Shown: positions 10,372 through 64,000 of the stretch, piece by piece
Position numbering within the stretch: the stretch's first letter is position 1
How the letters are laid out: each line of letters starts with the position of its first letter
Source of the DNA: Octopus sinensis
Taxonomy: Eukaryota
NCBI RefSeq assembly: GCF_006345805.1
Contig: NW_021832425.1
Coordinates: forward strand, 58,534-122,533
Direction of reading: 5' to 3'
Length of the DNA: 64,000 bases
The notes under the pieces: model-generated
What the model was told of the DNA's origin: nothing
What the model saw: the letters and a program-made list of their open reading frames with translations, nothing else
The model's database searches: none
Made by a program: the position numbers and the translations under genes

Positions 10372-10909
10372 ATGGTGTTTTCTCATATTTATTAATATAT
10401 TTTTAGGCTGATAAACCAGTACAAAAACCTAGAACATTTCAACGATTTACATACAGAAGATAGAGTGTAGAAAAACTGTTTCAGCTTTCGAGGTTAAACT
10501 CCTATTGACGCATCCAGCAGGACCGAGTTTGCTGAGTTGACGACATATGAGGCGATGTGCAGGAAAACGTGGAGAAATCAAACTTTTGTCAAAACTTACA
10601 AAGGCAAAGAAGGAGGCAGCCGAGTATGAAAAGCCGAAAGTAACTTAATCACAAATATTTTTAAGACAGTAAAAACCCACTTAAAGAACGTGATTGTGGA
10701 TCCAGTCATGATTGGTTCCGTTATTGGAGTATATAGTGGAAAGATATACAATAAAGTAGAAATTAAGGTTTGATTATTACTGGGTTATTTGTCAGCCTGA
10801 GATGGTTGGACGTTATTTGGGAGAATTTTCCATGACTTAAAAGCCTGTACAACACGGGAGACCAGGACATGGTGCCACGCATTCATCTTGATTTATTCCT
10901 CTTAAATAA
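10372..10909 (+). pseudogene. RPS15: 40S ribosomal protein S15 (uS19) unprocessed pseudogene
   Basis: [22 protein letters not shown]|TVKTHL, EIK|PEMVGRYLGEFS and HGRPGHGATHSS.FIPLK*. Introns at 10375-10406, 10493-10520, 10640-10665 and 10768-10795. Stops at 10461, 10838 and 10889, plus a frameshift. Confidence 0.92.
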
Positions 10910-11027
10910 TTTACTTTTTTCTTTGTTTTTTCGTTTTTAAATTAAATGCCTTTTAATCATTGACTAACTTATTTCAATAATTAACACCAATTATCCAAAA
11001 AAAACATGTAAATTTAATAAAATATTA

Positions 11028-11634
11028 TGTCGCGAGCGCAGCGCGCGACCGAGCGCTAGACGCAACTTTGACACCTAACAAGCCTATCATCAACAAATAT
11101 ATTTATTAAATTATTTAAAATTTTAACATGATTTAAAATTAAAATTGAAATAACTTAAGTTTTCCATTGAATCCCATAAAATAATTTATAAGTAGACCTT
11201 AATAGAAAAAGTAAAATCAATGAATACTGAACGCTAATTTGGTTTAGGTTGTGAGGGGGGTAATAATTTGACAGATCTCATTGCTATTTTTTCGTTTTAA
11301 TCTCTAAAATTAGGTCTTCTAATCAAAAATGAACTGTGCAGACAGGCTTGCTCCTTCAGAAGATTCTTGTTTTGACATTTTTATAAATTATGAAGCATTT
11401 AGATTTTTTCTCATTATTCTAAAATATCAATTATAAATTTTAAAATATTATTTTTATTTATGAAATCGGTTTTAAAGCTCATTCTGCTTTGGCATCGATT
11501 TTAATTTTTGTTATCGAATATATTTAATCCAAATACAAGCCTGGGTATTTGTCAATTTATAGATTTTTTGATTGATCGGATCTAGAAATTGAGTGGTCGC
11601 TCACTGCGCTCGGTCGCTCGCTGCGCTCGCGACA
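11028..11634. mobile_element. 607-bp MITE with TIRs of about 29 bp and TA flanks
   Basis: Left end TGTCGCGAGCGCAGCGCGCGACCGAGCGC matches the reverse complement of the right end with 1 mismatch. TA lies at 11026-27 and 11635-36. A second, inverted copy is at 30254-30833. Confidence 0.9.
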
Positions 11635-11987
11635 TATTAAGACCAGGAAACTTCCGTATAAGATGATAAAGACTAATGTTATTTTCACAACATATTCAAT
11701 ATTATTGCACTATACGTTAGCTTCCCATCATTAAATAAAAGGACTGAAAAATTTTACAGCAAGTGGGCTAATAAAAGTATTTAATTTTGTCAATAATGTA
11801 TCCTTATCTTATGTGCTTGATGGAATTCTGCATTTCGTTTTTTATGATATGAACTTTAATGTTTATGACATTTTGAAATAAGAGAATATCAGTTAAAATA
11901 AAGAGGAATTGCAAAAATCAGAAAATTTACAAAGACAAAGAAAGTCAACAAAGAAAGGAAAAGGTCCCGTTTACGAAACTAATTCAT

Positions 11988-12951
11988 TTATTGGAATCTC
12001 CAGTGGTTGATTTGGGAGAGCAAAGGACTATCTCCGGGTAGAACACACGAAATTGTCCTTTTTACATAATAATCGGAATCCCAGTTCAAATTTTCGATAA
12101 TATCCTTCAATAAGTGTGCTTTCCCCACGTCATAACCAGTCAGTCCATTTTTCAAACTCACAAAATGAACATGAAAATGATAAAACGTGGGTTAATAATG
12201 AACAAACACTCGCAAGCTCTTGGAAAAGCATACTCGCGCTCAATTTCTCTCTAAGTATGATTAATCACAGAATCTAACCATTCCGCTCTCCAAAATGTTT
12301 CTGAGGAGGGGAATATGACTTTGTCGGAGATCTCGAATGCTCATAATGTCCCCTCGATTGCAGATAGCTAGAGTGTAGAGTTCATCCAGCGAATTTTGAT
12401 TTCACTTTAGATTCGGGACCATCACGAATCCTGTTGAAGGATCGGAATCTCGAAAAATCACTTTTCACAATCACTGTCCAAGAGGTTTTGAATCCACTAA
12501 AAATAAAGTAGACAAAGTACTGTGGTATTAAATTGGCACGTTTTTAGGTAAGGGAGGACTGCATTGATGTATTCATTGCCAGTTTCTCTTAACATGACCA
12601 AAGAAGATGCCTCGCTGTATTTCTCAATGTGGAGAGGGGTGGCTGGACAAATTAGAGTTATGTTTAATTCTAGAAATAAGCATATAAACAATTCTTTTTC
12701 AGGAAATCAGAACACGTTTTCAAATGGCATCGATGATAGATGTCGTTAGAAATTTGATTTGAAAATTTGTTTGCTTCAAAGTCGACAATTTGATTGATTT
12801 TGGTGACTTTTAGATTTGAGTGCTGCATGATTACAATCGCGTCGTGTTGATTGTGTTTGAATAAACAAAATATTGTGTTTGATGTTTTATCTTGTCTTAA
12901 GACACGAACAAATTTCAACGTCTTAAAAACACCACTTAGATCCATTATCAT
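11988..12951 (-). pseudogene. DCPS: m7GpppX diphosphatase (scavenger decapping enzyme) unprocessed pseudogene
   Basis: [56 protein letters not shown]-like HY*PTFYHFHVHF and AHLLKDIIENL. Micro-introns include 12497-12520. Stops at 12402 (Trp) and 12192 (Gln), plus frameshifts. Confidence 0.92.
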
Positions 12952-12999
12952 ATTTTTTATATTAATTTTTTATTTAATAAAGTTATATTTCAGGCAATA

Positions 13000-14130: not shown

Positions 14131-14314
14131 AAATTTTAAATTGTTGATGAAAAATGTACTAAAAAATAAAATCAGCCCAAAAAACTTTTTAAAAACCATT
14201 CTTAACAACCCTACTTTTTGAGATTTTCTCAAATGTCTAAAACCTAAAAAAAAGAAAAATGGACACTCTCTAATTCAAAATAAATTCTAACTCATCAATC
14301 AAAAAATGCAATCA

Positions 14315-14783
14315 TTAATTCCCATTTTTTAGATACTCGGCCGAAATATTATCAAACATTGACATGACATCCTTGATCTGTATGTAAAGATTATCCCACA
14401 GCCCGTCCAGATCTTCGTTGAGAACCATCCTATTTTCTCTGGCCATCTAAAATGGGTTAAATAAATCGCATTTACAATATTAGCATCACAAAATCCACTA
14501 AAACTGCAAAATCTCTTATTCATAAGAAGCCTTGCTTTCCCTATGGCACAATTGATAGAATCAATTGCTATTTCAGTTAGAGTAGCAATAAACCGTCAGA
14601 TGATAGGCTGTCTGAAGTGTCCAATTCATTTTGAAACGTTTTTATTAGATCGGTCAATTCATCCTGACATTTACTCATTTTTAGCAAATATTTATTCCCA
14701 TTGGGTCCATCAGATTTCTTTAAAATATAAAAAAGCCTAAATTATGCCTGAATTTGTTCGATTTGTTCGATTGGGGGTTGCAT
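14315..14783 (-). CDS. GKAP/DLGAP (HURP-like) domain protein, 127 aa, 4 exons
   Basis: Spliced product includes GNKYLLKM..AIGKARLLMNKRFCSFSGFCDANI..DLDGLWDNLYIQIKDVMSMFD, the GKAP homology domain. Introns at 14718-14747 (GC-AG), 14568-14593 and 14447-14475 give a 384-nt open frame. Confidence 0.82.
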
Positions 14784-15127: not shown

Positions 15128-15946
15128 ATGTCAGAAACCATTAAATCTTCAGTAAATAATATTTCAGATATCAAACAGAAAACTCTTGACAAAATAAAAC
15201 AACTACAATTCAAACGAGTAAAATACCAAAATTTATACAAATTTAGAATGAAGCAAGAAAAATCAATCTCGCAGAAGTAGCTGAGGAAGCAAGGCAATCC
15301 AAACTCCCCCCAAATTGGCGGGCAAAAGAGCAAAGACACGAATATTTCCTTTCCGAAGAAAAAACAAAACAGGTCAGTCCTTAAAACTCCTAAATCCTCA
15401 GACCTGTGATGAAAAAGGCATTGGATTTGAACGAATGAAATACATGGAAAGCACAATTCACGATCTTCAAAGAGCGGACAGGAAAATCAAAAGGAAAGCG
15501 CCCAATCCAGACTTCATAGGTCTCTCAGACATAAAAATTGTAGATTTTAATCGAGCTACTGAGCTAAAATATCAAAAATTGATCTCTCAGTTGCCTGTGG
15601 ATGAGGAAGCTTATCAAAAACAGAAAGAAAAACTGTTTTTAGACTTATTTTATTTTTAGAGGAATGGCTTTTTATGCTGATGAGACCACCTTGGGGTTGA
15701 CTGACGTTAAAGACTCGGAAGAGGCGATGAATGCCTTGGTGTCTGATTTGGCAGCACAGTTGTGGCTGTTGTTGTAGTTGTAGAGTGGCCAAGCGTGATA
15801 AGCATAGTCGGAGAAGAGTGGAAAATGAGAAGGATATTGATTACATCAATAATAAGAACATGAAGTTTAATAAAAAACTGGAGAAATATTACGGAAAGTA
15901 TACCGCGGAGATCAAACAAAATCTCGAGAGAGGGACAGCTTTGTGA
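15128..15946 (+). CDS. SYF2: Pre-mRNA splicing factor SYF2, 228 aa, 6 exons
   Basis: NEARKIN..KLPPNW and [37 protein letters not shown]. Introns at 15218-46, 15373-401, 15520-43, 15635-59 and 15759-83 give a 687-nt open frame. Confidence 0.95.
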
Positions 15947-16996: not shown

Positions 16997-17933
16997 CTAA
17001 ATAAATGGAATTCCAATCCAAGTCAATTCTCTATATTGTTCATATTGTGACCCGAACAGCGAAATCAAAAATTTTTCTTCTTTTTCAATTCGTTTTCTAA
17101 AGAAATCAACGCCACGATAAAATTGCAGAACAATCGAAAATACATTACCAAGCATTATCTAAAATCAAACATAATAGTAAAAAACCTGTGAACCAAAAAA
17201 GAAATAAAATAAACCGGTATAAGAAGGATGTCGAAAATATTTATAAACTCCAGTTTTTATTAGTATATGATCTTCCCGGTATTTCTCCTCTAGCTCATAA
17301 CTGAAGTTACTTCCGAGCGTCAAAATAGAGACCTTTCGTAAAATATTTCCTGATACACCAAGAATTAGTCCAAAGACAGAAATAATCCAAAAACGTTGCT
17401 TAGCGTCTGAAAAATGAAAACGTAAAAAAAACTTGGAAATAAAAAAACCCAAAACAAATTTTCGAAAACCCCAAACCCGATGGAAAGATTATAATCTTTA
17501 TGTTTAAAAAAGAAAGCATCTGTTAATGTGCTCCGAATGTTTCCAATGTTTGCGAAAGTAAATTCCAAAAAATGATATAAACTCAATTGGATTAAAAATA
17601 CTCCTAAAAATCTATTTTTAGTCCACAATAACATCAAAAATAGTCCACCAGATAAAAATACCCCCAATGCTGTGGAGCTTGCCAAAATCTACAAGAATTT
17701 ATTGATTTTTTTACATATTTATAGTCATAATAATTTATTTTAGATGTTTTCTTAAAGAGTAGAGATGTTGGAATAATTAGAATAGTAAATATAATCGCAG
17801 TATATGAATTTGTAAAGTACAAAATCGGTAATATTGAGGAGCCGCTTAAATAATAAACAGTTGAGAAAATGAAGTAGTTTTTTCGTTGATTTTTCTATTT
17901 TTTATTCAAAATATAAAAAACGTCTAAATTCAT
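16997..17933 (-). CDS. ICMT: Protein-S-isoprenylcysteine O-methyltransferase (STE14), 276 aa, 5 exons
   Basis: YHFLEF, LGSNFS, H.LIKTGVYKYFRHPSYTG and RIEKEEKFLISLFGSQY..GIPFI*. Introns at 17895-921, 17689-714, 17407-432 and 17159-185 give an 831-nt open frame. Confidence 0.93.
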
Positions 17934-18943: not shown

Positions 18944-20760
18944 TTGGTGATTGGTGATTCATTTTTAAGGTTAAACATATCCTCAAATGGTCCCGGGGTT
19001 CTAGCTATAAAACTGGACATTAAGAATGCATTCAACAGCCTGAGGAGAGATGTGATTCTCGAAACCTGCTTAGAAAGGGCTCCTGATATTATCGGCTTGG
19101 TTCACCTGGCATATGGGTCAGACAGCTCTCTTCTTTTTGGAGATGAAATTATTAAATCGTGCACAGGAGTTCAGCAGGGCGACCCTATCGGTCCACTGCT
19201 GTTCGCCCTCGGCATTGACTCTGCCGTACGGAAAGTCGATTCTATTTTCAACCTGTGGTACCTCGATGATGCAACCATCGGGGGCCCCTCTGATACTGTG
19301 ATTGAGGATATTTTCAACATAATTCCCACCCTGCGTGAAATTGGACTGGAAGTAAACGTCAGCAAGTGCGAGCTTATAAATATCTCTTGCTCGCACGAAA
19401 AATTCGGTTCCGCACTAAACAAGCTGCAACTTCGCCTTCCGGGGCTGACAACCACACCCATTGATGATGTTCTATTCCTTGGCGCGCCCATGGGCCAAAT
19501 CCAACTTAAGAAGTCGCTATCTGAGAAAGCCAAATGGGTCACTGATTTCACAAATAAGCTCATGTGGCTTGATTCTCACTACGGATTTTTCATGCTCAGA
19601 GTAAACCTCATGTTGCCAAGGCTTCTATACTTGCTGCGAACTTCAAACTGCTCAATACAATCTGACACGCTTCAATCGCTCGATACTTCTTTGAAGTTGG
19701 CCGCTGAAAAAATTCTAAACATATCCTTTGATGACGCTGGTTGGACTTGTTGCAAATTACCTCTACGTCTTGGCGGAGTTGGACTCCGTTCACCTCTGGA
19801 CATGGCTCTTCCTGCATTCCTCTCCTCACGTGCGAGCTCCCAAGCCCTCATCACCCAAATCCTACGTAACTCTCGCGGATTGGAAGAGGACCGGGTTTTC
19901 TCTGGAGCTTGCGAATTCTGGAAGGGATCTGGATTGGCCATTCCATCTAACATTTCACGCCAATGGGAATGGGATGATATCTCCAGCAAAGCTAAAATGG
20001 AAGCAATCAGACCTACTTTGGATCAGCATCGCCTCGCTTGTTTCGGTGCCGCTGCCAGACCTGAAAGTGGGGCGTGGCTTAATGCCCTCCCTTGCTCCCA
20101 ATCTGGAACCCTTCTCGATAATGACTGTGTGAGGATTGGCGTAGCAATACGCTTGGGACTTAATGTCTGTTCGGGGGGCCAATGCCGATGCGGTAGTAAA
20201 GTCGATACCAAAGGACTACATCCCCTGTCATGCAGAAGGAGTGCTGGCCGTGCTCCCAGACACTCCGCTATCAACGAGACTATTTCGGCTGCGTTACAAG
20301 CAGCTGGATTCCCGACAGAACTGGAACCCGTTGGGCTTGACCGTGGAGACGGTAAACGCCCAGATGGAGTCACCATTTTCCCGTGGAGTAATGGGAAATG
20401 CCTCGCGTGGGACTCCACGTGCACAGACACCTTCTCAAAGACCAATATAGTTGACTCCGCGATCAGTCCAGGCTCAGCCGCTGAGAAGGCTGAGGCACAT
20501 AAAGTTCAGAAATATTCCAACCTGTTGAACAACTTCATCTTCTCCCCAATATCCGTAGAAACCTCCGGGGTCATGAGTCAAAAATCGTTCGAACTCGTCG
20601 GGAAAATCGGGAATCTGATCTCGAGAAGACGGAGAGAGCCTCGGGAGAAGCAATGGTTGTTCCAAAGAATATCCATTGCGATCCTGAGGGGCAATTTTCA
20701 TATATTGGACTCACTTACGATTTGACAAATGATGTTTTGCTTAATTACAAAAAATCTCCT
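18944..20760 (+). mobile_element. CRE-clade non-LTR retrotransposon, 5'-truncated, with an uninterrupted 593-aa frame (RT, CCHC finger, REL endonuclease)
   Basis: KLDIKNAFNS, GVQQGDPIGP, WYLDD, CRCG..H.LSC, RH, RPDG..WD and QRISIAILRGN. Confidence 0.95.
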
Positions 20761-24703: not shown

Positions 24704-25560
24704 ACTATTCTACACTACGACCACGTGACCGGTAGATATCAAGGTTGGCAACGTGAATGGATTGGTCTATATTTGAAACGGAAATGCAAAATATTTACAA
24801 AATACAACATTAATTATAACAAAACAATTTTCAAAATAACAAAACAATTTTCAAAATAACAAAACAATTTTCAAAATAACAAAACAATTTTCAAAATAAC
24901 AAAACAATTTTCAAAATAACAAAACAATTTTCAAAATAACAAAACAATTTTCAAAATAACAAAACAATTTTCAAAAAAACAAAACAATTTTCAAAATAAC
25001 AAAACAATTTTCAAAATAACAAAACAATTTTCAAATCGCCTAACAAAAATTCGAGTGCGTTGGGATGCGAAGTCAGGACCGCTTGCGCAACATCAACAAC
25101 CCAGATGTCTCCTTTATAATACAACAAATTGTAAGCATTCAAATCGGCATGTACAAGCTGACACTTCTTATACAAATTCTCCATCAACTGGCCCGTTTTT
25201 TCGTAGGCCAATGACAATTTCCGTGGGGTTAAAGTAACAAATTTCAATGTAGGAGCAGCCATGTAATTATTTCCCACCAAAGACATTAAAAGCACATGTT
25301 TTTTTACACAAATAGGCCTCGGACACAAAATACCGCTGGCATGTATTTTTAAATCATGAACGAAAGACTAAACCTTTTCAAATTCATAAATTCCTTGTAT
25401 GCCCAAAGAGTTACAAACTTGGTTTTTTTCCGTGATGTGACTTTACTACTGCGTAATGAATTCGAGGATCAAAGTGAAGGAAAATGTCTCTCCCTTTGTA
25501 GTCAGAGTGAGCCGTCATAAAAATAAATCTTGGAACTCGAATCCTCCTCCTCAATTTTAT
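24704..25560 (-). pseudogene. RIOK3: RIO kinase (RIOK3-like) partial pseudogene
   Basis: WAYKEFMNLKR|IHASGILCPRP..KHVLLMS, LVHADLNAYNLLY, VDVAQAV and HPNALEFL. One acceptor appears to be AA. The C-terminal exon is replaced by the repeat array, and DIYRSRGRSVE* lies at about 24704-24745. Confidence 0.8.
24821..25033. repeat. 20-bp tandem array (aaaacaattttcaaaataac), about 10.5 copies
   Basis: Read directly from the sequence. Confidence 0.95.
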
Positions 25561-27901: not shown

Positions 27902-28708
27902 TATTTATTTCTGTTTCATAGAGAATCGACAATTAATTGGCAAGGAGATTGTATTTCTGAAATATCCACGTGCCAAATTTGTTTAACAAAAAATCTATGT
28001 CACAGTCCAGGGCTGCGAGGTTTTGAAAATATTAATAAATTAAAAAAAAATTACATTTCTGAAATTCTTTTGTTGATCTCTTCAATAAATATCTGAAATT
28101 ATTAATTTTTTCTTAATTATTTCAGAGATTGTGATTTCAGGAAAACCAACATATCACCAAAATCATTGATTAAACGTAGCGTTTTTTTAGTTGAAAGAGT
28201 GGAATCTGTTATTTAGTATTTAATTAGCGAAAAAGTATTTAATTAGTTTTTTGATTCTATTTAAAAATTCACGGAAAATGGTTAACCAAACTAATTTTTG
28301 AGACGAAATTTATTAAAAATATTAATTAAAATTTATAATATTAAACTTATAAGACTAAACTAACCGACAGCCCTAGGGCAGATCTTTCAGCTTGCTACTA
28401 GACCCTATACCCTTGGTATTTTTAATACCCTAACTTTCTAGAGGTATTTTTCCAAAACATTCTCTTAGACTCAAAAAAATAAAAATCAAAAAATTAAAGA
28501 AATTTAAGTTATTACAACTTTTTTACGCGGCTTATATGAACGGTGTATTCTATTTCTTCATCATCAAGAATGGTGATCATCTCTCCGTCAGTGTTTGTTA
28601 CTTTATATTTTTTTGTTGAAACTTGGTCGTACAGCGGATATTTTCTATTACCCACGTTTGCGTCCTCATCGTGACGTATTAAAACATGAGATGATTTAAA
28701 TAAAATAA

Positions 28709-29474
28709 ATGGGCATCTCCTGCTTTACATTTCTATCATTCGAAAATAACCAGCCATTATTTAATAATTAGTGTTGTGGTAATCACCGGCGACGCGTACA
28801 GTGATCGTCGTCCATATGACGTCCTGATAGACAAAATAGGAAATCTGCCCAACCTCCTAGTCAAATCCTCAATGAAGGGGGAACTGGTGTACTACTACAG
28901 TAAACTGGCACAAAGTACCCCCGCCCTTATAAGACACAGGACCCAGTTTTGTGTTATTCGAGCACTCCGAATTCCCCACATGGACATTCGCGAAATCCCT
29001 GACTGGGCATTCCTGTGCCTCCGTCGCTAAGAATTTCCGCAAAATAGTGGACGGGTTAGAGGAGGCCTACACCTGTCTCCGTCACGGAAAACAGGACGTG
29101 GTCAAACTGGCGGGGACTGTGTTCAATCTGCAGGACTTCACTGTGGAGGTTGACTGCGTGTCCGTCCAGGAAGGGTACCGAGGAACACTTGTCCGAACAA
29201 TCTACGAGCCATGCGACAGTGTGGGCATGTCGAGGACACTTCTCGCTGAGTTTCTTCAAGATTCCATCGACATCTCTACCGAGGACGTGGAGTACTGTGC
29301 CGGTGGGAAGGGGACTAAGGTGGGCATCCTTGTTTGTTGTAGGTGTTTGTAATGAGGGCTGTGTTGATGGGACAGGTGGAGGATTCGGGAAAGTGGAAGA
29401 CGAGAGATGAATTATCTGTGCAGATGAGTCAATCATATTGGACTTGTGTCGGGGATTGTGTCATTGATGTGTGA
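28709..29474 (+). CDS. MED20: Mediator subunit 20; exon ends uncertain
   Basis: HSEFP, GTVFNLQDFTVEV and YEPC..LLAEFLQ match MED20. An intron at 28915-28933 (or 28915-28939) joins the two ORFs, and another is likely at 29320-29342. The first donor is non-canonical. Confidence 0.75.
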
Positions 29475-36500: not shown

Positions 36501-37640
36501 GCTCATGTCCGAGAAGCCAAATTTCTCTAAACTGGCATGCATCAATAAAGTCACAATCCAATCGTGGTGAAGATCAAAATGATGTCAATAGATAAAATCA
36601 AAATGCTCGAACTGGCTACGGTTCCAAGAAATCTTGAAATCCAAACTAAAAAATTGTTATTTTGATAGCTCCAGCTCTTTAAACAAGGTTATCAGCTATT
36701 TTACGAAAATAATTCTGGAAGCAAAATCAACGGCTATACTCAAATTTCAAAAGCTATTTGGCAAATGGCAAAGGTGATGAAACTGCATTTCTGGGGGAAT
36801 ATATTCAAAAGAACATAAATAGGCTAATCAGTTTTCATGCGAAAATATCAAACGAGGAACATAGGAAATATGATCGATTACCCTCAAACAGAAGACTGAA
36901 AAAACGACCAGTACGTTTCCTTTTCTCAGTGAAAAAGGACTGAATACCTTACATTCCACAAAACGACTTACTTTCATGGATCAGACAAAATCTCGGTTAG
37001 TTTCAAAACCTAATAGACACTGTTTGAGAATTCTTCAGCTTTTCCAACAGCCTTATATGATTTAGGCCTTTTATTTCTTCTCGCTCCAAGGTTTTTGCCA
37101 AAAAAACACCAGAAACAAATCAAATTCACTATAATTTTTTTTCGATTTAAACCAAATCACCAATTACGAAATTTCTTTTTCGAATGTTTATAGATTAGAC
37201 ATAAACAGGAAGTAATTCCAAAGTATTTAATTGATATCGATTAACTATAGTCAACTAAATTATTTAATTAAGTCCAGATCGTCAGTGATTTTCCTCCCTT
37301 CTTTGAAAAAAAAGTTTGCCACAAACTTCCTTTGCTTTTCCATTACTGTGTTAAGGTTTTTGTTCAGCTGTATGTCTTCTCAGCATTGCAGCTCTGACTT
37401 GATTAGCGACAGAAGCGTACTTTCGTCGTCTACCTACATTCCTTGTTTGTGTTTAATGAGCATACTCTCCAGCGTCCTCTTTAGCACAAAGAACAGGAAG
37501 TAATTAAAACTAATTTAATTTAGTCTAAAAGCGTTTATCGATTTCCAGTTTAGAATTAATATATAAACGCATTTTAAATAAAATATCAAAATTACCTGAG
37601 ATATGTTCCAAAATAATTTCCCTGAAAAATCATTATACCA

Positions 37641-37808
37641 AAACAATTTTCAAAACAATTTTCAAAACAATTTTCAAAACAATTTTCAAAACAATTTTCA
37701 AAACAATTTTCAAAACAATTTTCAAAACAATTTTCAAAACAATTTTCAAAACAATTTTCATAACAATTTTCATAACAATTTTCAAAACAATTTTCAAAAC
37801 AATTTTCA
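37641..37808. repeat. 12-bp tandem array (aaaacaattttc), about 14 copies
   Basis: Read directly from the sequence. Confidence 0.95.
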
Positions 37809-37809
37809 T

Positions 37810-38089
37810 AACACTATTCTACACTACGACCACGTGACCGGTAGATATCAAGATTGACAACCTGAATGTGGCTTTCAAAAAATACAACCTTTTCAGTAAA
37901 ATCTTCAGCGAGCCCATTTAATGACAGCCCCGATACCCTCTTGAATAAAAATTCCTCCGCCAATTCAACATTATTTTTAACTAATTCAAGTTTTCTCGAA
38001 GCAAAAAACTAAACTAAAAAACTACAAAAAATACGGCCACAACATTTCGGACATCGCTTAACAAAAATTCGAGTGCGTTGGGATGCGAA
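37810..38089 (-). pseudogene. RIOK3: RIOK3 3'-terminal fragment
   Basis: HPNALEFLLSDVRNV..EEFLFKRVSGLSL..DIYRSRGRSVE*. It overlaps copy A sequence 25035-25071. Confidence 0.75.
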
Positions 38090-41203: not shown

Positions 41204-42147
41204 CTAAAATTTTTTATAAATAAATGGAATTCCAATCCATGTCGATTCTCTATATTTTATATATTTCGAGCCAAACAAAGATATCAAAAGTTTTTCCTCT
41301 CTGGTAATTCGTGCTTTAAGTAAGTACAGACCATGAAAAAAAGACGCTAAGATAAAAAATATATTACCAAGCATAATCTAAACTTAAAAATAATATTAAA
41401 ATACCTGTGTTCCTAAAAGGAAATAAAATAAACCAACATAAGAAGGATGTCGAAAATATTTATAAACTCCATTTTTTATCAGTACGTGATCATCCCGGTG
41501 TATCTCCTCGAGCTTATAACTGAAATTACTTCCGAGGGTCAAAATGGAGAGTTTCCGTAAAATATCCCCTAATACACCGAGGACTAGTCCAAATACAGAA
41601 ATGATCCAAATATATTGTTTAGATTCTATTAAATGTTAACAAATACAAAAACCTGGATATAAAAAAACCGTGATTAAATTTTCAAAAATTGCAAATCCCA
41701 TATAGAGGAAATAAAATTTATTTTCAATATAAAAAGCATTCGTTGACAAGTCCCGTATGTTTCCAATGTTTGCAACAGATAATTCTAAGAAATGATATAA
41801 ACTTGTTTGAATCAAAAATGCACCCAACACTCTATTGTTGGCCAAAATAACACAAGAAATACTCCACCTGATAAAACTACGCCAAAAACTGTAGAGCTCA
41901 CCAAATCTAAAAAATGTATTAAGTTTTTACATATTTATAGTCATTATAAGTTATTTCAAGTGTTTCTTTAAAAAGAAGGGATGTTAGAAGTATAAGAAAA
42001 ATAAATGTAATTTGGAAATATATATTTGTAAAGTATAAAATCGGCAGCATTAAGAGCTGATTGAATAATAAACAGCTGAGAAAATCAAGCAGTTTTTTCG
42101 TTGATTTTTCTATTTATTATTCAAATATAAAAAACTTCTGAATTCAT
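41204..42147 (-). pseudogene. ICMT: Diverged ICMT paralog with several 1-bp frameshifts (pseudogene or read errors)
   Basis: Collinear with 16997-17933 and with the same intron positions; the upstream flank is also duplicated (to about 42260). Confidence 0.82.
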
Positions 42148-46876: not shown

Positions 46877-49800
46877 ATGGCTCATGGTCTCTACATAGAC
46901 ATCATCAGAAAATTCGATACTGAAATTTTACTCTCAGCTGTATTCTTATATCTCTACATTTATTGGTTATTTTACTTAAATATAATCTAGGAGACTAATC
47001 TTATTCTCAGTGGTTTACGGCATTTGTTTCGGGTTCTGCCTTTACCTTGTTTTTCAAAAGTATTATTTTTATAAAATAAAAAACTCAGATACTACAAGAA
47101 TATAAACCAATTTATTCTCAGAAAGATCAAACATTTAGTAATTAATTACACAGGCTGATTCCTTAGTTTTACACGCCTTTCTCTCGCTACCGAACTCGTG
47201 TGTGCACTCTCTGTGAGGAGAGGGACTGTGCCAATATAAGGCTTGATATTATATATATAATATAGAAATAAGTTTTCTATACTTTTGGGCTTTCAACATG
47301 CCGATAATAAAATATCAGCCCACATCGACGAAGCACTGCAGGAAGTTTTCATATTGATAATCATGTTTAGTTTTGTGATGAAATTATTGCCTCTTCTGTC
47401 GACTGGTGGTACAAGTTAGTACTAATTCCATTATTCCAGAAACGTGGGACAAAACAGGGAATTTCCCCGCGAAGTAAAAACATGCCTTCGATGTCTTTTG
47501 GCTGTTATTTATGAACGAGTAAACCAGGTTAGCTCAGCCTATGTAGCCACTGTACAGTTTTAGTGGCAGAAATGTCTATTTTAACTATATTTTAGCAGTA
47601 AATTGTTGTATTTAATTTTTCTCGGTACATTTAAACTGTTTTTAGATATCAGTGCGTGTGTTGCTGAGAAAACAGATAATTCCTGCAGTAGTAAATCACA
47701 TTTGTCTCTATAAACGGGCAGTAGAAAGTAATGTTGGATATATTACAGTGTAGACAATACTGGTGGGAGTATAGAACGACAATTTTTTAATTTGGAGGGA
47801 CAAGAATTGCACGTTTCTACATATAAACGCACTTCGGAGCTGAAATATATTGAAATGGTAACAAAGCGTCTTCTTGTTTTTCTTCTCCCCACAAATACTC
47901 ATAATTGTGATGTGCTGCACTGTCTTCTCAGTCATATTCTGTCCATATTTGTGCTTATTCCTGCAATGGATATAATCTCTGACCCCGTTTAGGATTTTTT
48001 GGTAAATTTGTAGGACTTTATAAACATGTTGGTGGTTCTTGCATTGAGTAAGGAGGAGGTTGAGACTAAGGTATTTGAGGAAAGACCGGAAAGAGAGATT
48101 TTGATTAATTTTGTAAACTTTGATACAAAGAAGGGACTTTCACTTAATGAAATCATGGCTGATAAAATATTAGAGGATGCTTTTGCACATTTTCTTGAGG
48201 AACAGTCAGTCCCCATTCTTGAACTGTTCACACAAATAGGTAACAATTAAATAGATTACGAATAATTAGCTAATCGAATTCATTAACATAATTAAGTAAA
48301 TTAGTTCATAAGATTATTTATGTTTAGAACGATTAATTGAAAAATTGCTTGATCCTGATTTTACAGCGGTGGAAGAGATTAAATTCATTGCCCAGGATTT
48401 TTACCAAAAATTCTTTTTGCATGAATCTGACAAATTTCTTCTACTAACAATTAAATACAAACAAAAACTGGAAAACGGTAAGTCATTTTGTCCAATTAAC
48501 AATATTAGCAATATTTTCAACAGACATAACCAAGCTCAGGTGTACTGCGGCATTGTTTGAGTATTCTCCGTGGTTACTGTGGTAGACTAAGAGACCACTG
48601 CTATGATTTGCTGGAGACTATTTTTGTACCAGTATTCCGTCAGAGTGTGATGGTGATGTGTTTTTATAATCGGAAATAGTACTACCAGGCTGTCTACTAC
48701 GTGAAACCTCGGATTCTGACAGAAATGAACTCCAAGCAGTAGATTCTTTAATTTATTCTAGAAAAGGACGAAATTTCCGTAAAAACGTGTTAAAAATAAC
48801 CAACAAGTTCATGAACCTTTTCCGACTTCCAAAAAGTGTTATTTTGTTATTATTGCAGTTGGGAATGAGGAATCTCCCGATGGAGGGTCAGTGGTAGGAC
48901 TTTGGGGTGATTGGTAGTTCTCGGACTCACTTACGGACTTTGACATGATCAGTGGAGAGCACGTGGACGGAGAGGCCTCCCCGAGTGAAGGAAGCACGGA
49001 TTTACATGACATGAGCAAATGGAAGGTCAACATCAATAAAATTGTGCCTATTGAAGAGCCAGCCAAAACAAGCGACATTTTACTCAATAAATTCAAAAAC
49101 AAACAAAAAAGTGCGTTTTTGATGGAGTCCTTCCGAGAGGACTATCCATGTGAGTTTGTCTTTATATTTGTGAATTAGCTCAAAAACATTTTGTTGTTCG
49201 GAAGCACACGGACTTTTATTTGTTGGCTCAAAAATTAAAGGACTTTCACGGTTTTTTAGACTTTTAAAAAATTCCAGGAGATTTGGAGATTTTTCAAAAT
49301 TTGCCCAAAAAAGGTTTTTCCGTGAAATTACAGGATTTCCTGGAGGCGAACGTGAAGGAATTTGAATCCTTTATTCGGGTTAAGTAAGTTGTGGCATTGC
49401 AGACATTGCACGGAACGCCGCGACTGCGGACGAGCGAACTACTCCACAGCTTCATGGCATCCCCTATGTTCCCCGTCGAAATGGGAGGGGACTCTAAATT
49501 TGGGGACATCATTAAACGTGTCCCTCGGAAATTGGTTCGGGAGAAGGGACAAAACCTCGAAGGCTTCACACAACTACTTGTAAGTTCCACGGAATCTCCG
49601 AAGAGTCGTCCCTCACAAAATGTGCAAAAGACAGTCAATGCTGAGCAATCGTTCAACAACAAGGTTCTGATTTGTCGACCAATCATAGCTGTTTGTCCCT
49701 CTCTACAAGAACTTGGCCAATCGAGTTGATTCTGTTCATGTTAAATGTCAAAGTGAAGCTGATGAGAATAATGTTCATCTTGTCGACTGTTTGCTGTATC

Positions 49801-50338
49801 TTGGTTTGTTTGTGTGTTGAATAAGTTTAGTGGGTGTGGGGAAGCATTCTCCGGGTAGATTATTTATGGTTGTTCTTCATTTTGTGAGGACATATTTCTA
49901 CATGTTGGTCGACGGGGTGTTTGATTTGTACTTGGAATACAAAATATCCACGTTTTTCGTGGAACATAGGATAACTCCGATTATTAGGAGTCTGAAGGGT
50001 GTTGAGAAAGTGACTTATTTGTAGATAAGGTTTTTGGTCGGACGAAGGGGAGTGGTACTCAGAGGCGGAGGAATCGTGAAGATGCGTTTAATTTGCTTCG
50101 AAACGACTTAATTCCGGGTTGTGTTTTTGTGCCTTATTTGAAGAGTCGATGATGTCTTTTATCGGGGATGAGTCGTATAAGGAAATTGTTACTACTTTTT
50201 TGGATACATTTCAACATCCGATTTTGAATAAACATGTTTGTGGTTGTTGTTTGAGTGTAGATTTCATATGTTCTACTTGATTTGATAATCAATGAATTGT
50301 TTCCAGAAATACAAGCCACCAATGTTAATTGCAGTTGA
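46877..50338 (+). CDS. SNX14: Sorting nexin-14 (TM, PXA, RGS, PX, PXC domains), about 20 introns; at least one apparent 1-bp indel near 47010
   Basis: CTLCEERDC, DWWY, ELKYI..LLP..C..DIISDP|D, WKVNI, DFYLLAQKLKDFHG, GDIIKRVPRKLVREKGQNLE and FQHPILNKH|ISYVLLDLIINELFPE. Micro-introns include 46966-90, 47345-70, 47987-48013, 49150-78, 49251-77, 49379-402, 49664-88, 49804-30, 49999-50024, 50118-43 and 50236-60. Confidence 0.92.
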
Positions 50339-52297: not shown

Positions 52298-52700
52298 TGG
52301 CTGAAGCATAAGCTATGGATAATGGATCTGGACAGTCGTGGGTTCGTATCCGAAGGAGGCTAGTTTCCAGCTGGGGTCAATTCTCGTTATCGTTCCCCTG
52401 CCCGTGAGGCAATGAGTACTTCTGACACGACACAGTTGAAAAATGGGGATCTCTCACCTTCCTTCCGGTCTTAGCGTGGCGTTATGGGGTCCACCATGTC
52501 AGTTGGAATTTCGGATATGGAAACGCTCAGGAGGCACTTAATGCTTACCGAAAAAGGACTTCTAGAACTGTGACCCTGGGACATTGTCGTCTCAGTCCGA
52601 TCATTGTGGGCAGGATCGAACCTTTCAGAAGGATCTCCCTCGCTTGAATCTGGGATCAAGGGGGATTATAATTAACTGGCTTACCCTGGTCCTTTGGTCA
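52298..52700 (+). mobile_element. Candidate tRNA-headed SINE
   Basis: A-box-like TGGCTGAAG at 52298 and B-box-like GGTTCGTATCC at 52341 (43-bp offset). The body is shared with 10086-10325. The cloverleaf is poor. Confidence 0.4.
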
Positions 52701-54219: not shown

Positions 54220-56390
54220 CTTAAGGTTGTCTTTCAACTCCCCCCACATTCTTGCTAGTTCAGTTGGATTGGTAGTGCGAAACAAATTCGACATCCCAAT
54301 ACACGAAAGATAAGGGAACTTCTTGTTTAAATTTCAAATGAGAAATTTATACAAACAAGTCTTCATTTCAAAGTAGTATTTATTATACGCCGAACGCAAG
54401 ACACGTATTTATATTCTTCGTGGAGACGTAAATTACGGCAATTTTAGCCGTTGTAGGTAAGAGTTTGTATTCCGGACGCATGCTCTCCTGTGTTTTTTTA
54501 ATCACGATCGTCTGAACATATGCACGTGACTTGTTTGAATCTTGGACTTGTAAAGAGTTTTGGTAGTGCTTGTAAAATTTGGATGTTATTCCATCCCAGT
54601 TTGAGGCTTTCCGAAGTTGCAAATTGGTACTTTGTGCATATAAATTTCTTGATAGTGCCCCAATAAGCTGGGTCGATCTTTTTAATTTAGTATTCTATAG
54701 GTAGAAATTTGAATCAATTGCAATAAAATTGATTTTAGAAATAAAAGTGCTCCAAATACTGACAAGAGATACGCGTCCTTGAGGGAAAACTGCAAAAATC
54801 GGGTGCCCGTCTTGGGAGTGGCTCGATTGGGGTCACTGGGCACCGACGGGAGTGTCACGGCCGTCGAAACTCACTCGTCTTCGATACAATACAAAGTGAG
54901 GACATTTCGAACACGTCCCGTCGACGGTGATTTCGCGGAAAACGGGAAACAAATCTCCCCTCATCTTCCGTTCATATTCCTACTCGACAATCACCCGCCA
55001 CGTGAGATTGTTGAGAATTCTGATCTTAAAAGTGGCGGGAAATCAACAACTGTCTTGTCGGAGGCTCCCACGGCCAGGAGTTGTCCCGTCGAATTCCAAT
55101 TCACGGATTTGACTCCGAGAGCATTGTCATACAGACTGAATGTTAAAAAATTAAAAATCCAAAAAATTTTAAAATTAAATATTGAGAAAATGAGATGTTT
55201 GATTAATTAGGTCGGAACTGATTGGGTAGAGACAGTTTCATCCTCAGCCATTAAATAACAGCAAATGATCCCGACTGGAAAAAAGATTATTGCGAGGAGA
55301 ATTCCACAAAATGTATACTTTTTTGAAGTTACAGTAACCTAAAAAAATCCAAAAAATGAGTTTATACTGTGTTCTGTTGCATTATAAAAATAATAAATAT
55401 GCAAATCTATTATATAGGATAATTTACAAAGATTGAATTACAGTTATAAAAATATTAAAGGGGAATCTACTTACACGATTCGCCTATTAGCAGAATCTTA
55501 ATGAGATTGTGGGGTCCTGTCATACAAGAAAATTACTCTTTAAATTTTCGTCTCGAAAATCAATGTGCGATTGTGAATGGCAAATTGGTTAGATTTAGTG
55601 AACAAAACGTGCTTGATTGGTGTGAGTATTGTGGATGTAAACGCCCGTTTACGAAATTCTCGAAACATACCTATTTTTGTTTGACAAGACTCTCCTCCAA
55701 TATCCCCTGCCCCACGACGTGTTCCTCCAATGCGCGGGTGCTGTGTCCCCAGTTATTGAGGGACTCCTTTCTCTAAGCCATAATCGACCCCCTTTATCGA
55801 CATTGGTCCTTATGATAACCGCCTCCAAATTTGGGAATATAAAACATACCCTTTGAAAAGCGAGGTCTTTGGCCAGTCAGTTGTTTTATTACTTTGGCTA
55901 CTCTTGTCAATCTATCCCCAGACTGACCAACAGAAATATTAAGACAGAGCTTGGTAATCTTGACTTTTCTCATTGGATTTTTTTCCTTCGTAGATGAAGT
56001 GGCTCAAGAAGAATTCAAAATCAGACTAAACAAGGCAACATTCATTATTTGTGAACAGACGGTGACATTTGAACTGGCCATCTCTTTTCAAGAATACACT
56101 CACTTTAATATTGACTTGGCAAACAATCTTGCAAATCTCTCCGCCTTTTTTGCGTGCCACGGTAGCCCCTCATCCGTGACGGGGTTGAACTTGTCAACCG
56201 TCATCTTAGGGTTGTCTTTCAACTCCCCCCACGTCTTGCTAGTTCAGTTGGATTGGTAATTCGAAACGAATTCGACATCCCAATCCACGAAAGATAAGGA
56301 CACTTCTTGTTCAAATTTTCAATGAGAAATTGATATAAATAAGTCTTCATTTCAAAGTAGTATTTATAATCCGCAGAACGCAAAATTTAT
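54220..56390. repeat. Local duplication of about 170-220 bp (54220-54445 vs 56205-56390 and 56651-56675) of a LINE linker-like segment
   Basis: Direct nucleotide match. The minus-strand frame SKTWGELK..KAERFARLF is only LINE-linker-like. Confidence 0.7.
55440..55650 (+). pseudogene. Papain-family (cathepsin L-like) protease fragment
   Basis: Frameshifted QN..CGSC followed by ENQCAIVNGKLVRFSEQNVLD..CGC. Confidence 0.65.
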
Positions 56391-59940: not shown

Positions 59941-60621
59941 CTGATTTAAAAAAAAACTATTAAAGATTTTTTTAGTTAATTTTTTCCTTTTAATTTCTTT
60001 CTTTCGATTCTCTTTGTTTCTTTGTCTCAATATACTTAAAAGAACTCAGCTTATGATCGAAATGTATTGAACGAGATGTTTAACTGTACGCTCTAACTCT
60101 TTCTCGATCGCATCAGCCTCTCGCGTTTAAAGAATTAATTATTAAATAATTAGCCTAGAAACTTTTTAAAGAGCAAATATTTTTCAAAAAAAATTTTTAT
60201 TCCAGATATTTTTAATGAAGTACCAAAGAAATCAATCTCCCAGATATTCAGAAGAAAATGCAGTATTTTGCCCTTTACATGTCAAAATTTTCAATCTTTC
60301 ATCAAAAATAAGACGGGCATAACAAGAACGTGATTGCGTTCTGTAAAATGGATGAAAATTAATTTTCTGTAAAAATTTAGATATATATTAAAAAATCTTA
60401 ATCGAATGCTAAAAAATAAATTTTTCTCAAAAGAATTTTTAAGATGTGACTAATTGGAGATGAGCATTAAAAGGGGGGCTAATTTGGAAGAGTCACTGTA
60501 TTAAACATTGACCATATCCATCAAATTACACAAAAATATGATCTTATACCACCTCCCAGACGATAGAGGTCACTACAATTCATTTATTCAACAAAGAATG
60601 AAATTATCAAAATAGAGAATG

Positions 60622-63600
60622 TCATTGAAAAGACTGAGCTCTACTCAGTTCATTTTTCTTTTGAATGAATGCTTTACACAATTCAACAGAATCCTCAAAA
60701 ATCAAAGACTCCTCAATATTGTACAGTTGGGCGTTCTCAAACATGAGTACAACATCCTTAGAGAACTCCTCCAATGAAGTATATTTCTTCAACTTGATTC
60801 GACTCTACAATACAACACACCCAACACCTTAATCCGCTTTATGTCCACTGGCTTTTTAATAATCTCGTAATAGTCAGGCAACTCTCTCCTCGATGGCAAT
60901 TCCAGGAAAGGATCAATCAATGCTCGGCCATCCCTTAACTATACTAAAACCATTACTCGTCATGATAGTCAATCAAAAATGTCAACAAATCGTTCAAGAG
61001 CTGACCAATATCCCTCTGGGTTGGCTTGACTGCTCTCTTTGGTCTACTGGGCACATAATCCTCTGAGAAACTCGAATCCTCCTCCTCAACTTGTGCCCGT
61101 CTCCGTGAGAAAGAATGTTCCCAAATTGGCGAGTTCACTTTTTCATAAGACGAATGAACAAGCCAAAGGGGGAGTTCATCCTCGGTGATTACTCTTGAAG
61201 GAATATTGTCACGTTTATCCATTTGTTCACGCTGGGAGTCCATCTGTGTGAACAACTCATATTCCTCGTTTGACCGCATTAGCATAGCATTGATGGCTTC
61301 ATCGTCGTGGATAGAATCAGCGTCCTTAACCTCATCTCCGTCCTGATCCAATAAACTCTGCAAGAATTGCCTTCTTTGATCGGATGTTGACTTTTGGTCA
61401 AACATTCCTGCACGAATGACCTTCTCGTCCATATTTAGTTTATTCTTTGCAGCAGAAAGAATTCTTTCCTCCACAGAATTAACAGTGACTAGACGAAGTA
61501 CTGTGACTTGTCTGAGCTGCCCAATCCGATGTGCTCTGTCTTCGGCCTGCAGGTCTTGATGGGGATTCCAATCAGAGTCAAATATTATCACTGTGTCCGC
61601 AGTTTGTAAGTTCAGTCCCAACCCACCAGCCCGAGTACTCAGAAGGAATATAAACGTGTCAAGTTGGGGGTCGTTGAACTGAGACAAGAGGAACTCCCTG
61701 TCCTCAGCTTTGGTAGACCCGTCCAATCTGAGGTGAGAAAAATCCCTCATATTCAAATAATCCTCCAAAATATTCATTAAAGATGTCATTTGACAAAAAA
61801 CAAGACATTTTCGATTCACTGCTTTCAATTTGGGCAATATTCTGTCAAGGACCTCAAATTTTCCCGAAACACGGAAAAGAAGAGGCCCAGTGACCATATC
61901 ATTGGACATTCCAAATTTCTGTGCCAACGACTTTTCAACCGACTCAAACATGAAAGGATGATTACATATCTTCCGTAATTGCATAAGAGTATTAGAAAGT
62001 GACCTCCCAACAACTTTTGACTTTTCATCACATGTGAGGACTACTCCATTCTTCTGCATATGTGTATACATAATTCTCTGGAGTGGAGTGAGGGCACATT
62101 TGATTATATATTCCACTTTATCCGGCAACTGACATTCAACTTCCTTTTTTAGTCTTCGAAGGATAAATGGACGTAAAATCGTGTGGAGTCGACGAATTAC
62201 CAAAAGTGACTCTTCCTGGTTAAGTTCCACCCGCTCATTCATACTAGCAAATGGAGCACTAAACCACTGCTCGAACGTGGCACAGGATTTAAATATTGTC
62301 GGCTGAATAAAGTTTAAAAGAGCCCAGAGTTCAGGAAGACGGTTCTGCAGAGGAGTCCCCGTTAGAAGCAGTCGGTAGGGGACATGGAATTTGCTGGAAA
62401 GAATACTGGTCAGTTTACAGTGATGGTTCTTCATACGATGTCCTTCATCGATGACCAGATAAACCCACCTCATCTTCCTGTTAGTCAAAAAAGATACCTT
62501 CGAAAGGACATTTTTGTCTTTTATGATATAATCATATGTTGTAATGACCACATTTACATTTGTAGATCTCATTCTTAAGCCGACTTCCCTCCTCACTTGT
62601 GGGGTCCCTCGATATGCCACCACAGCCATCGAAGGTGCCCATCGACCAAACTCATTCACCCAATTGGACAAAGTCCTTCCAATCAGCACGACCACTTACG
62701 ACAAGGGCACCACAACCAAATGGGGACCGTGAATTCTCTTATGTTCCAATAAATAGGCCAGAAGAGCAATAGTCTGAATAGTCTTGCCCAAACCCATCTC
62801 ATCTGCCAAAATACCGTTCAAATTGTTGTTATAAAGAGACACCATCCACTCCAGTCCAGCAATCTGATACAACTTCAAAGTGCCGCCTGTGAGGATTGTA
62901 GGCTGGACTTGAATCTTTTCTCGATTAAAATGAGCAATGGAATAACAGTCCTGTCCTTCCTCCCCCAATGACCGATCACACATGTGGGACTGCAATAACT
63001 TGGCCATATTCCCTATATATTCGTCCGTTTGTTCCAACAAGTATTTCAATCGGGTGTCCTTCTTTTGATCTATCAACTTTCGGTACCCCACTTCATCCTC
63101 TTCCTAAAAACGTGTTTAATTATTTATTTGCCATTAATCGACGCATTCTTTCCCGCCGAATTCGATCCTCCTCTTTCTTTTGCTCTCGTTCATTCGTCAG
63201 GTGGTGGTTTAACACGGCCTTGTTCACTTTGCCCAGTTTGGTTGCTCGAATTCGCATATTTTCACGGAATTGCCTTTGATGTTGCTGAATTCTCCCCAAA
63301 AATTCCTAAAAATCAGAATTTTTACATTTTAACTAAAAATTGTTGTCTTCTTAGTCTCTCGGATTCCATTTTTTCATGTTTTTCCATTCTTTCTGTTATT
63401 CTGGAATCACGGAGGCTTTGTCTCTTGACTCGACGACCAAAGGCAGGTCCCTCAATTCGGCAGGACTCCTTCATCACACACAACACTTCTTCCCGCACGT
63501 GCTTTTGGAGATCCAGCAGGCCAATCGCCTTCAACTCGATCAAAGCCTTCATTTTATTGTCCTCACTAAGACTGTTCAAAACTCCCGCCAGACTTTCCGA

Positions 63601-64000
63601 TCGATATTTTAATTGTTGTTTAATTCTGAAAAATCGATAAATTATATTACATATTTTCCCGCTCTTTTAATAATATGTTCATGTCTATTTTCTAGTGGTG
63701 ATTATTTTTTAGGAATACAAGTGGGTTTATGATTCCTAAATCATCTAAGAGCTCAGAAGGGATTGGTAATCCACGTTTGATTAGTTGATATGTGCTTATT
63801 TGGGCTTTTATTTTGTTTAGTTGGGTAGCTGTGACCTGACAAGCAAGTTGTCTCATTTCGTTGGTTAGCTGGGGATTGGGTTCCGGTTCAAGGGAAGAGG
63901 ACTCCTTCTCGATCTAGGTGTTTTGGGTAATATGTTACATTTCTTGCGTCTGTTAGGTAGGAAGGGACTGGTGTTGGTACTTTTTGGGCAATATCGGGCT
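60622..64000 (-). CDS. SMARCA4: SWI/SNF ATPase SMARCA2/4 (BRM/BRG1; QLQ, HSA, SNF2, HELICc, bromodomain), 5' end beyond the window
   Basis: [21 protein letters not shown] and [14 protein letters not shown]; bromodomain [14 protein letters not shown]; [16 protein letters not shown]. Nine introns: 60805-27, 60934-56, 62474-97, 62676-99, 63104-31, 63306-33, 63626-50, 63692-718 and 63914-38. Confidence 0.96.

Follow-up and report, generated by a model that had tools for sequence, protein, structure and literature searches.

Ancestral introns shrunk to about 23–30 nt in the genes of a 64-kb DNA window, most probably of dicyemid origin

Are the very short segments that interrupt the reading frames of a 64,000-nucleotide stretch of contig NW_021832425.1 (the window) genuine introns and, if so, what kind of introns are they and in whose genome do they lie? 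A first-pass annotation had proposed that every host gene reconstructed in the window yields a conserved protein only after the removal of many micro-introns, and had named six such genes: a GKAP-domain gene, SYF2, ICMT, MED20, SNX14 and SMARCA. The analysis described here supports the core of that interpretation as essentially right. The segments are very probably ordinary U2-type GT-AG spliceosomal introns, miniaturised to about 23–30 nucleotides (nt), in nuclear DNA of a strongly reduced animal that is most likely to be a dicyemid.

Introns were located with a protein-to-genome spliced aligner written for the analysis, which used BLOSUM62, allowed GT..AG introns of 15–300 nt in any phase and forbade stop codons. 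Only homology-anchored junctions were counted. In total, 44 introns were catalogued, spread over nine host genes or relics of genes in the part from 10.4 to 64 kb. Although lengths of 15–300 nt were permitted, 41 of the 44 fell within 23–30 nt, with a mean of 25.88 nt, a standard deviation (sd) of 1.89, a median of 26 and a mode of 24–26. All but one of the 44 anchored junctions could be joined with GT..AG; the remaining junction, in SMARCA, prefers AT..AG. The range of 19–32 nt given in the first pass was too wide, as the secure introns occupy 23–30 nt and lengths of 19–22 and 31–32 nt are confined to ambiguous alternatives or to a pseudogene. Its statement that most introns measure 23–30 nt held, but longer introns had been missed: one of 88 nt, one of 118 nt and possibly some of 43–51 nt. 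Ambiguous boundaries were found at the first MED20 junction (near 28900–28939, where removal of 19, 25 or 34 nt in each case bridges open reading frames, ORFs) and at SNX14 positions 48478–48523 and 49808–49858.

Such segments could in principle be artefacts, if the many available GT..AG pairs allowed decayed or frameshifted sequence, from pseudogenes or by chance, to be stitched into ORFs. Several genes in the window are indeed pseudogenes, and naive removal of any GT..AG segment of 17–45 nt opened reading frames of 283 and 468 codons even after the sequence had been shuffled. Because shuffled sequence gives the same result, the opening of an ORF after removal of a short segment is not evidence of an intron, and the naive search was rejected; a codon-usage ab initio version, which was conservative and incomplete, served as support only. 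In the SNX14 region, GT..AG candidates were about equally frequent at each length from 15 to 300 nt (roughly 15 per length), so the placement of 41 of 44 homology-anchored introns at 23–30 nt is far beyond chance (binomial tail about 1e-60). The SNX14 alignment scored 588 with introns, 395 if only introns of at least 40 nt were allowed, and 139 without introns. When the homologue was reversed the score was 70, with ‘introns’ of 51–296 nt, and on the opposite strand it was 61. Furthermore, complete Pfam domains appeared only after splicing, and 11 SNX14 introns share their exact position and phase with introns of a nemertean worm, as described below. These controls and positions refute the artefact explanation for practical purposes, leaving it a scarcely credible account of the catalogue.

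SNX14 carries the largest part of this evidence. Its raw ORFs gave only a partial PXA match, and a protein search with the joined raw ORFs returned no match; homologues were obtained by an exhaustive search with one spliced PXA fragment. After splicing, Pfam recognised PXA (positions 2–179 of 181), RGS, PX and Nexin_C, and the protein aligned to residues 94–909 of the 925-residue SNX14 of the nemertean Tubulanus polymorphus, its top homologue. The gene has 19 introns, fifteen of 23–29 nt, two of 88 and 118 nt and two with ambiguous boundaries. The same core introns were found across 16 homologues, and 12 introns were recovered with at least 10 of the 16.

Intron positions were then compared between the two species. 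The Tubulanus SNX14 locus, mapped with its own protein at 100% identity, has 30 introns of 71–889 nt. The window gene was aligned from the Tubulanus protein alone, with no information on Tubulanus gene structure given to the aligner. Of the 19 window introns, eleven occupied the exact codon and phase of a Tubulanus intron and two more lay within one residue; chance would give about 0.2 exact matches (p about 1e-17). Because the 88-nt and 118-nt introns are both at Tubulanus-shared positions, they are real single introns. Inherited positions were also seen in SMARCA: two of its introns match Limulus introns (at 794/2 and 830/0), and a third lies where a Limulus exon ends; Exaiptasia was left out of this comparison, its gene structure being too incompletely recovered. 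Since these positions are common to other animals, the micro-introns of the window are ancient spliceosomal introns that have shrunk, and are neither new insertions nor artefacts.

The other genes gave concordant results. The spliced 228-residue SYF2 protein corresponds to residues 29–242 of the 243-residue human protein (E = 3e-51) with no insertion or deletion at any junction, and covers the Pfam domain completely (1–154 of 154). Taking out introns of 26 and 29 nt improved the Pfam GKAP match from E = 1e-3 to E = 1e-11. ICMT is duplicated, with copies 24 kb apart that are 82% identical at the nucleotide level, introns included, and that carry three introns of 24–27 nt each. A 1-nt insertion or deletion distinguishes the copies inside intron 2, where the flanking exons stay in frame, and a 1-nt deletion just after intron 1 of copy b puts its exon 1 out of frame. 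The SMARCA2/4 product is about 60% identical to animal SMARCA2/4 and its gene has nine introns of 23–28 nt plus one problem junction; removal of the intron at 62474..62497 brings back a block that is invariant across all homologues. Once spliced, each of the six named genes (SMARCA as SMARCA2/4) matched orthologues from end to end or complete Pfam domains, and ORF finders do miss these genes, as had been remarked. The claim went too far in saying that every host gene is restored, as an RPS15-like gene, a DcpS-like gene, an RPL11 fragment and the first exon of ICMT copy b remain disabled after intron removal.

The consequence of failing to remove these segments was assessed for the first 38 short introns. 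Eleven of the 13 whose length is a multiple of three hold an in-frame stop, and retention of any of the other 25 leads to a stop within 150 nt. Retention of almost any micro-intron would therefore cause premature termination, and gene models need a minimum intron length far below defaults. Gene finders run with the default minimum would break every gene here, and the raw ORFs yielded no more than pieces of the Pfam domains.

The five best gene models run through 2,462 sense codons without an internal stop and terminate with TGA, TAG or TAA; the genetic code of the window is the standard one. This bears on a ciliate origin, in which the segments would be Paramecium-like 25-nt introns or TA-bounded internal eliminated sequences of a ciliate germline genome. 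Ciliate micro-introns do resemble those of the window in size, narrow range and GT-AG boundaries: those of Stentor are 15–16 nt long. Paramecium introns average 24.8 nt, as cited in PMC2222250. Ciliates, however, have reassigned stop codons, whereas here TAA and TAG terminate ICMT copy a and GKAP, and ciliates lack the animal-type genes of the window (SNX14 with animal intron positions, the GKAP domain, MED20 and BRI3). Moreover, the segment boundaries are GT..AG, not TA..TA, and the intron positions are common to animals. A ciliate origin is already refuted by the code and the Tubulanus positions, and its probability is negligible.

What, then, marks such short segments for removal? T makes up 48% of their interior, A 26%, G 16% and C 10%; four introns exceed 80% G+T, as the first pass had observed. 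Phases 0, 1 and 2 occurred 20, 10 and 8 times among the first 38 short introns. At the 5′ end, 33 of 41 introns have A or T directly after GT, and bases further in show almost no constraint. Towards the 3′ end, A is over-represented at −8 (21/41, p = 0.001), T is enriched at both −6 and −5 (28/41 each, p = 0.007), A is avoided at −4 and position −3 is T or C in 35/41, giving the pattern TT-K-Y-AG. Counting back from −6, the first A is met at −7 or −8 in 25 of 38 introns, and in 35 of 38 it falls somewhere between −6 and −9; its distance to the 3′ end is less variable than that to the 5′ end (sd 1.8 versus 3.0). The introns had been described as lacking a clear polypyrimidine tract or branch consensus; this held in that the YTRAY motif showed no excess (14 of 38 introns against 11 expected), but overlooked the positional signal at −8 to −3. 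The introns do not have the features of the U12 type, that is, a /ATATCC or /GTATCC 5′ site with a TCCTTAAC branch site, as positions +3 to +6 accept almost any base and no branch motif is conserved.

Introns of 23–30 nt lie near the lower limit thought manageable for a canonical spliceosome. We propose that the whole intron may be recognised as one unit (intron definition), with the A at −7 or −8 serving as the branch point. The length window would then be set by a fixed distance of about 17–19 nt from the 5′ splice site to this A plus 7–8 nt from the A to the 3′ splice site, and could represent the minimal spacing that U1/U2 complexes tolerate. The narrow length distribution (sd 1.9 nt) fits such a size window, and whole-intron recognition agrees with PMC13644364, which reports canonical U2 snRNA (small nuclear RNA) and U2AF in species with introns of this kind.

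The architecture is already known and is not new in kind. In Dicyema, introns of 26.2 ± 1.9 nt (n = 16) at conserved positions were described in 2007 (PMC2222250). Ogino et al. (2010), as cited in PMC6543705, found very short introns and a ‘conservative exon/intron structure’ in 40 D. japonicum genes. Genome-wide, Dicyema sp. has a median intron of 27 bp, with two thirds below 30 bp (PMC6543705), and D. japonicum combines 6.2 introns per gene with 36.7% GC, 48.9% repeats and many LINE (long interspersed nuclear element) ORF2/reverse transcriptase sequences (PMC6736024). A 2026 paper reported the same architecture in myxobolid myxozoans, naming D. japonicum as the only other animal case (PMC13644364). 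The orthonectid Intoshia linei, too, is a parasitic spiralian of reduced organisation whose introns are short and comparably dense, but its median is 57 bp and most of its introns exceed 30 bp (PMC6543705), compared with 93% at or below 30 nt here. Micro-introns are useful for asking how little sequence splicing requires, as has been argued for dicyemids (2007, 2010, 2019) and myxobolids (2026). To this question the window contributes a clean worked example, with 44 homology-anchored introns, positions inherited from introns of ordinary size and a measurable 3′ signal.

The genome that carries the window is probably that of a dicyemid, a Dicyema-like parasite of cephalopod kidneys. Its intron statistics are indistinguishable from dicyemid values. 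Like D. japonicum, D. acuticephalum and Dicyema sp., the window has narrow lengths of about 26 nt, conserved ancestral positions, reduced GTa...AG signals, several introns per gene, about 36% GC and abundant repeats and LINEs. No difference in kind from dicyemids was found, nor any near-identical sequence in the databases searched. Two circumstantial observations concern relatives. The top SNX14 match is from a nemertean, a spiralian, and 12 of about 22 named best matches of the LINE reverse transcriptase at 18944–20725 (+) are from Octopus sinensis, at 45–54% identity. D. japonicum was collected from this octopus, its host. The LINE kinship could reflect old transposon exchange between host and parasite, a LINE clade shared among spiralians, or parasite DNA in the octopus assembly. 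On O. sinensis contig VCDQ01004651.1, which carries a related reverse transcriptase, an innexin gene is split by an apparent 1-nt frameshift and not by a micro-intron.

The same phenomenon might instead be seen here in a myxobolid, one of the myxozoan parasites among the cnidarians (for example Henneguya, Myxobolus or Thelohanellus). Median intron lengths in myxobolids are 22–27 nt, and Henneguya salminicola combines a 27-bp median with reduced GTa/AG signals and A residues upstream of AG (PMC13644364), as in the window. However, H. salminicola has 29% GC, and myxozoan transposons are described as relatively few (PMC13644364), whereas the window has 35.6% GC and consists mostly of transposons, values that fit D. 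japonicum better. Furthermore, no Thelohanellus or other myxozoan was present among the best 120 SMARCA matches, in which a single cnidarian appeared at rank 110. Whereas H. salminicola, T. kitauei and Myxobolus spp. are cnidarian parasites, the similarity matches of the window point to bilaterians and spiralians, with a nemertean as the top SNX14 match, and to octopus-like LINEs. The low GC, few transposons and myxozoan relatives that would mark a myxobolid genome are thus absent, which is an indirect argument, and a myxobolid source is unlikely.

Several points weigh against the dicyemid assignment or against the intron interpretation as a whole. The 27-nt median of H. salminicola means that intron length alone is shared with a second group (PMC13644364). 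In a protein database of 5.8 billion clusters, the closest proteins to SMARCA and to the reverse transcriptase were no more than about 65% and 54% identical, respectively, and this absence of close proteins is surprising if D. japonicum data are included in that database. An exact look-up of window ORFs in public assemblies found no record. The transfer RNA (tRNA) scan and the Rfam scan of the window found no tRNA, ribosomal RNA or snRNA; the 64 kb therefore offer no taxonomic marker of this kind. Splicing itself was deduced from homology, and the branch-point and intron-definition steps are inferences. Finally, the well-anchored SMARCA junction at 63100 has no usable GT donor. Its only GT..AG solution, of 43 nt, deletes five conserved residues (RRLMA), and the segment preferred by homology, 63100–63127, has a donor that looks like GTAAAT with a G-to-A change at +1.

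The lack of any close protein or transposon in very large collections could be read as pointing to a third animal lineage, undescribed and neither dicyemid nor myxobolid, in which introns shrank independently. Absence from a database is weak evidence, however, since the source may have been left out, and the mean and spread of lengths, the GC content and the repeat load closely match Dicyema, so that we hold such a lineage to be quite unlikely. It is similarly a long shot that the animal is neither a sequenced dicyemid nor a myxobolid, representing a third origin of introns below 30 nt or a deeply divergent dicyemid, and that the AT-donor intron at 63100–63127 is still spliced. Splicing of that intron would show that loss of a 5′ splice signal can be made good by the size window. 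A dicyemid genome remains the preferred reading.

Some genes in the window are disabled but keep their micro-introns. The RPS15-like relic has in-frame TGA, TAA and TGA codons at conserved Ala, Tyr and Arg positions and a garbled N-terminal third, and is an unprocessed pseudogene that still contains two micro-introns. The DcpS-like relic, which has a TAA just upstream of the histidine-triad motif, a TGA in place of a conserved Trp and, near 12470, a 1-nt frameshift, is probably also a pseudogene. Its WIQNLLD stretch, which we take to be the counterpart of QWVYNILD in human DcpS, lies outside the alignment to solved structures that was obtained. The RPL11/uL5 piece is a fragment or decayed copy; beyond about 56 N-terminal residues, the rest of the gene was not recovered in the window. 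Reassignment of stop codons was considered for the RPS15-like and DcpS-like genes and rejected, as the stops replace Ala, Tyr, Arg, Trp and Leu and the intact genes terminate with all three stop codons. It is notable that three housekeeping genes are disabled within a single window of 64 kb. Immediately upstream of the RPS15-like relic is one of two copies of a roughly 250-bp repeat. These copies, at 10088–10335 and 52447–52700 (+), are 88% identical, and the repeat could be SINE-like (short interspersed nuclear element) or a fragment of a long terminal repeat.

Table 1. Positions of genes, gene relics, introns and LINE ORFs in the window. Codon/phase values give intron positions in the named homologue.
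Feature	Positions	Strand	Evidence or remark
RPS15/uS19-like gene relic	10410..10906	+	Full-length alignment to solved uS19, E = 2e-43
RPS15-like intron, 26 nt, phase 0	10640..10665	+	Spliced alignment to uS19
RPS15-like intron, 28 nt, phase 0	10768..10795	+	Spliced alignment to uS19
DcpS-like (scavenger decapping enzyme) gene relic	11988..12952	-	Pfam DcpS and DcpS_C; solved DcpS structures
DcpS-like intron, 30 nt	12239..12268	-	Lower confidence; spliced alignment, stops tolerated
DcpS-like intron, 24 nt	12497..12520	-	Joins CQFNTT to WIQNLLD
GKAP-domain (DLGAP5/HURP-like) gene, C-terminal part	14320..14741	-	Pfam GKAP
GKAP intron, 29 nt	14447..14475	-	Pfam GKAP match continuous without segment
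GKAP intron, 26 nt	14568..14593	-	Pfam GKAP match continuous without segment
SYF2 gene, complete	15128..15946	+	228 codons, TGA stop, five introns
SYF2 intron, 29 nt	15218..15246	+	Human SYF2 alignment
SYF2 intron, 29 nt	15373..15401	+	Human SYF2 alignment
SYF2 intron, 24 nt	15520..15543	+	Multiple of three, no in-frame stop
SYF2 intron, 25 nt	15635..15659	+	Human SYF2 alignment
SYF2 intron, 25 nt, 88% G+T	15759..15783	+	Human SYF2 alignment
ICMT copy a	17000..17894	-	272 codons, TAG stop; Tribolium ICMT structure, E = 6e-30; Pfam ICMT 3-94/95
ICMT-a intron, 27 nt	17159..17185	-	Spliced alignment
ICMT-a intron, 26 nt	17407..17432	-	27 nt in paralogue
ICMT-a intron, 26 nt	17689..17714	-	Bridges two ORFs; same place in paralogue
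LINE reverse-transcriptase ORFs (examples)	18944-20725; 42.3-45.2 kb	+ (first)	
MED20 gene (approximate span)	28704..29474	+	Human MED20, E = 3e-5; Pfam Med20 28.3 bits, weak, above cut-off
MED20 intron, 23 nt	29320..29342	+	ORF-bridging only
ICMT copy b	41219..42113	-	First exon out of frame
ICMT-b intron, 27 nt	41378..41404	-	Spliced alignment
ICMT-b intron, 27 nt	41626..41652	-	Spliced alignment
ICMT-b intron-homologous segment, 24 nt	41907..41930	-	Downstream exon shifted by 1-nt deletion
SNX14 gene (aligned part)	47261..50338	+	795 codons, TGA stop, 19 introns; closest homologues named sorting nexin-14
SNX14 intron, 26 nt	47345..47370	+	Shared with Tubulanus, 123/0
SNX14 intron, 25 nt	47415..47439	+	Shared with Tubulanus, 137/2
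SNX14 intron, 118 nt	47528..47645	+	Shared with Tubulanus, 167/0
SNX14 intron, 26 nt	47728..47753	+	194/1; Tubulanus 195/1
SNX14 intron, 27 nt	47987..48013	+	Recovered with 16/16 homologues
SNX14 intron, 88 nt	48240..48327	+	Shared with Tubulanus, 354/1
SNX14 intron, ambiguous (31, 34 or 46 nt)	48478..48523	+	Spliced alignment
SNX14 intron, 25 nt	48561..48585	+	12/16 homologues
SNX14 intron, 29 nt	48660..48688	+	In weakly conserved linker
SNX14 intron, 23 nt	48836..48858	+	Shared with Tubulanus, 505/1
SNX14 intron, 24 nt	48894..48917	+	Spliced alignment
SNX14 intron, 29 nt	49150..49178	+	Spliced alignment
SNX14 intron, 27 nt	49251..49277	+	Shared with Tubulanus, 613/1
SNX14 intron, 24 nt	49379..49402	+	Shared with Tubulanus, 647/0
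SNX14 intron, 25 nt	49664..49688	+	Shared with Tubulanus, 734/0
SNX14 intron, ambiguous (33-51 nt)	49808..49858	+	Near Tubulanus 775/1
SNX14 intron, 26 nt	49999..50024	+	Shared with Tubulanus, 830/1
SNX14 intron, 26 nt, 81% G+T	50118..50143	+	Shared with Tubulanus, 862/1
SNX14 intron, 25 nt, 92% G+T	50236..50260	+	Shared with Tubulanus, 893/0
RPL11/uL5 fragment	55797-56003	-	N-terminal ~56 residues recognisable
SMARCA2/4 (BRG1/BRM) gene	60628..64000	-	5′ part beyond window; Pfam HSA, SNF2, Helicase_C, Bromodomain
SMARCA intron, 23 nt, 91% G+T	60805..60827	-	Limulus intron 830/0, identical codon and phase
SMARCA intron, 23 nt	60934..60956	-	Limulus intron 794/2
SMARCA intron, 24 nt, multiple of three, no stop	62474..62497	-	Hidden inside 580-residue ORF
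SMARCA intron, 24 nt	62676..62699	-	Limulus exon end also at residue 176
SMARCA junction, 43 nt if GT-AG	63100..63142	-	Homology prefers 63100-63127, 28 nt, AT..AG
SMARCA intron, 28 nt	63306..63333	-	Spliced alignment
SMARCA intron, 25 nt	63626..63650	-	Spliced alignment
SMARCA intron, 27 nt	63692..63718	-	ORF-bridging, adjoins aligned exon
SMARCA intron, 25 nt	63914..63938	-	ORF-bridging only

The surroundings of these genes are AT-rich eukaryotic DNA in which LINEs and DNA transposons are dense, with the compact animal genes sitting between the transposons. Besides the LINE sequences, there are ORFs for pogo/Tc5-like and Tc1-like transposases and an integrase ORF. What looks like a non-autonomous DNA transposon (a miniature inverted-repeat transposable element) occupies 11023–11639; it is 617 bp long, AT-rich and bounded by 34-nt GC-rich terminal inverted repeats that are 94% complementary. 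Coding-like units in tandem, visible in the six-frame ORF list at 1860–2650, 24920–25230 and 37530–37850 (e.g. KKIFCILVKMNNYDVLDLHDEVLKTFPPKK and NNFQ repeats), are satellite or minisatellite arrays among the transposons. Two pieces of host genes were missing from the first-pass list: a BRI3 (brain protein I3) domain at 55210–55381 (-), with a Pfam E value of 1e-8, and a WD40-like ORF at 54994–55206 (-).

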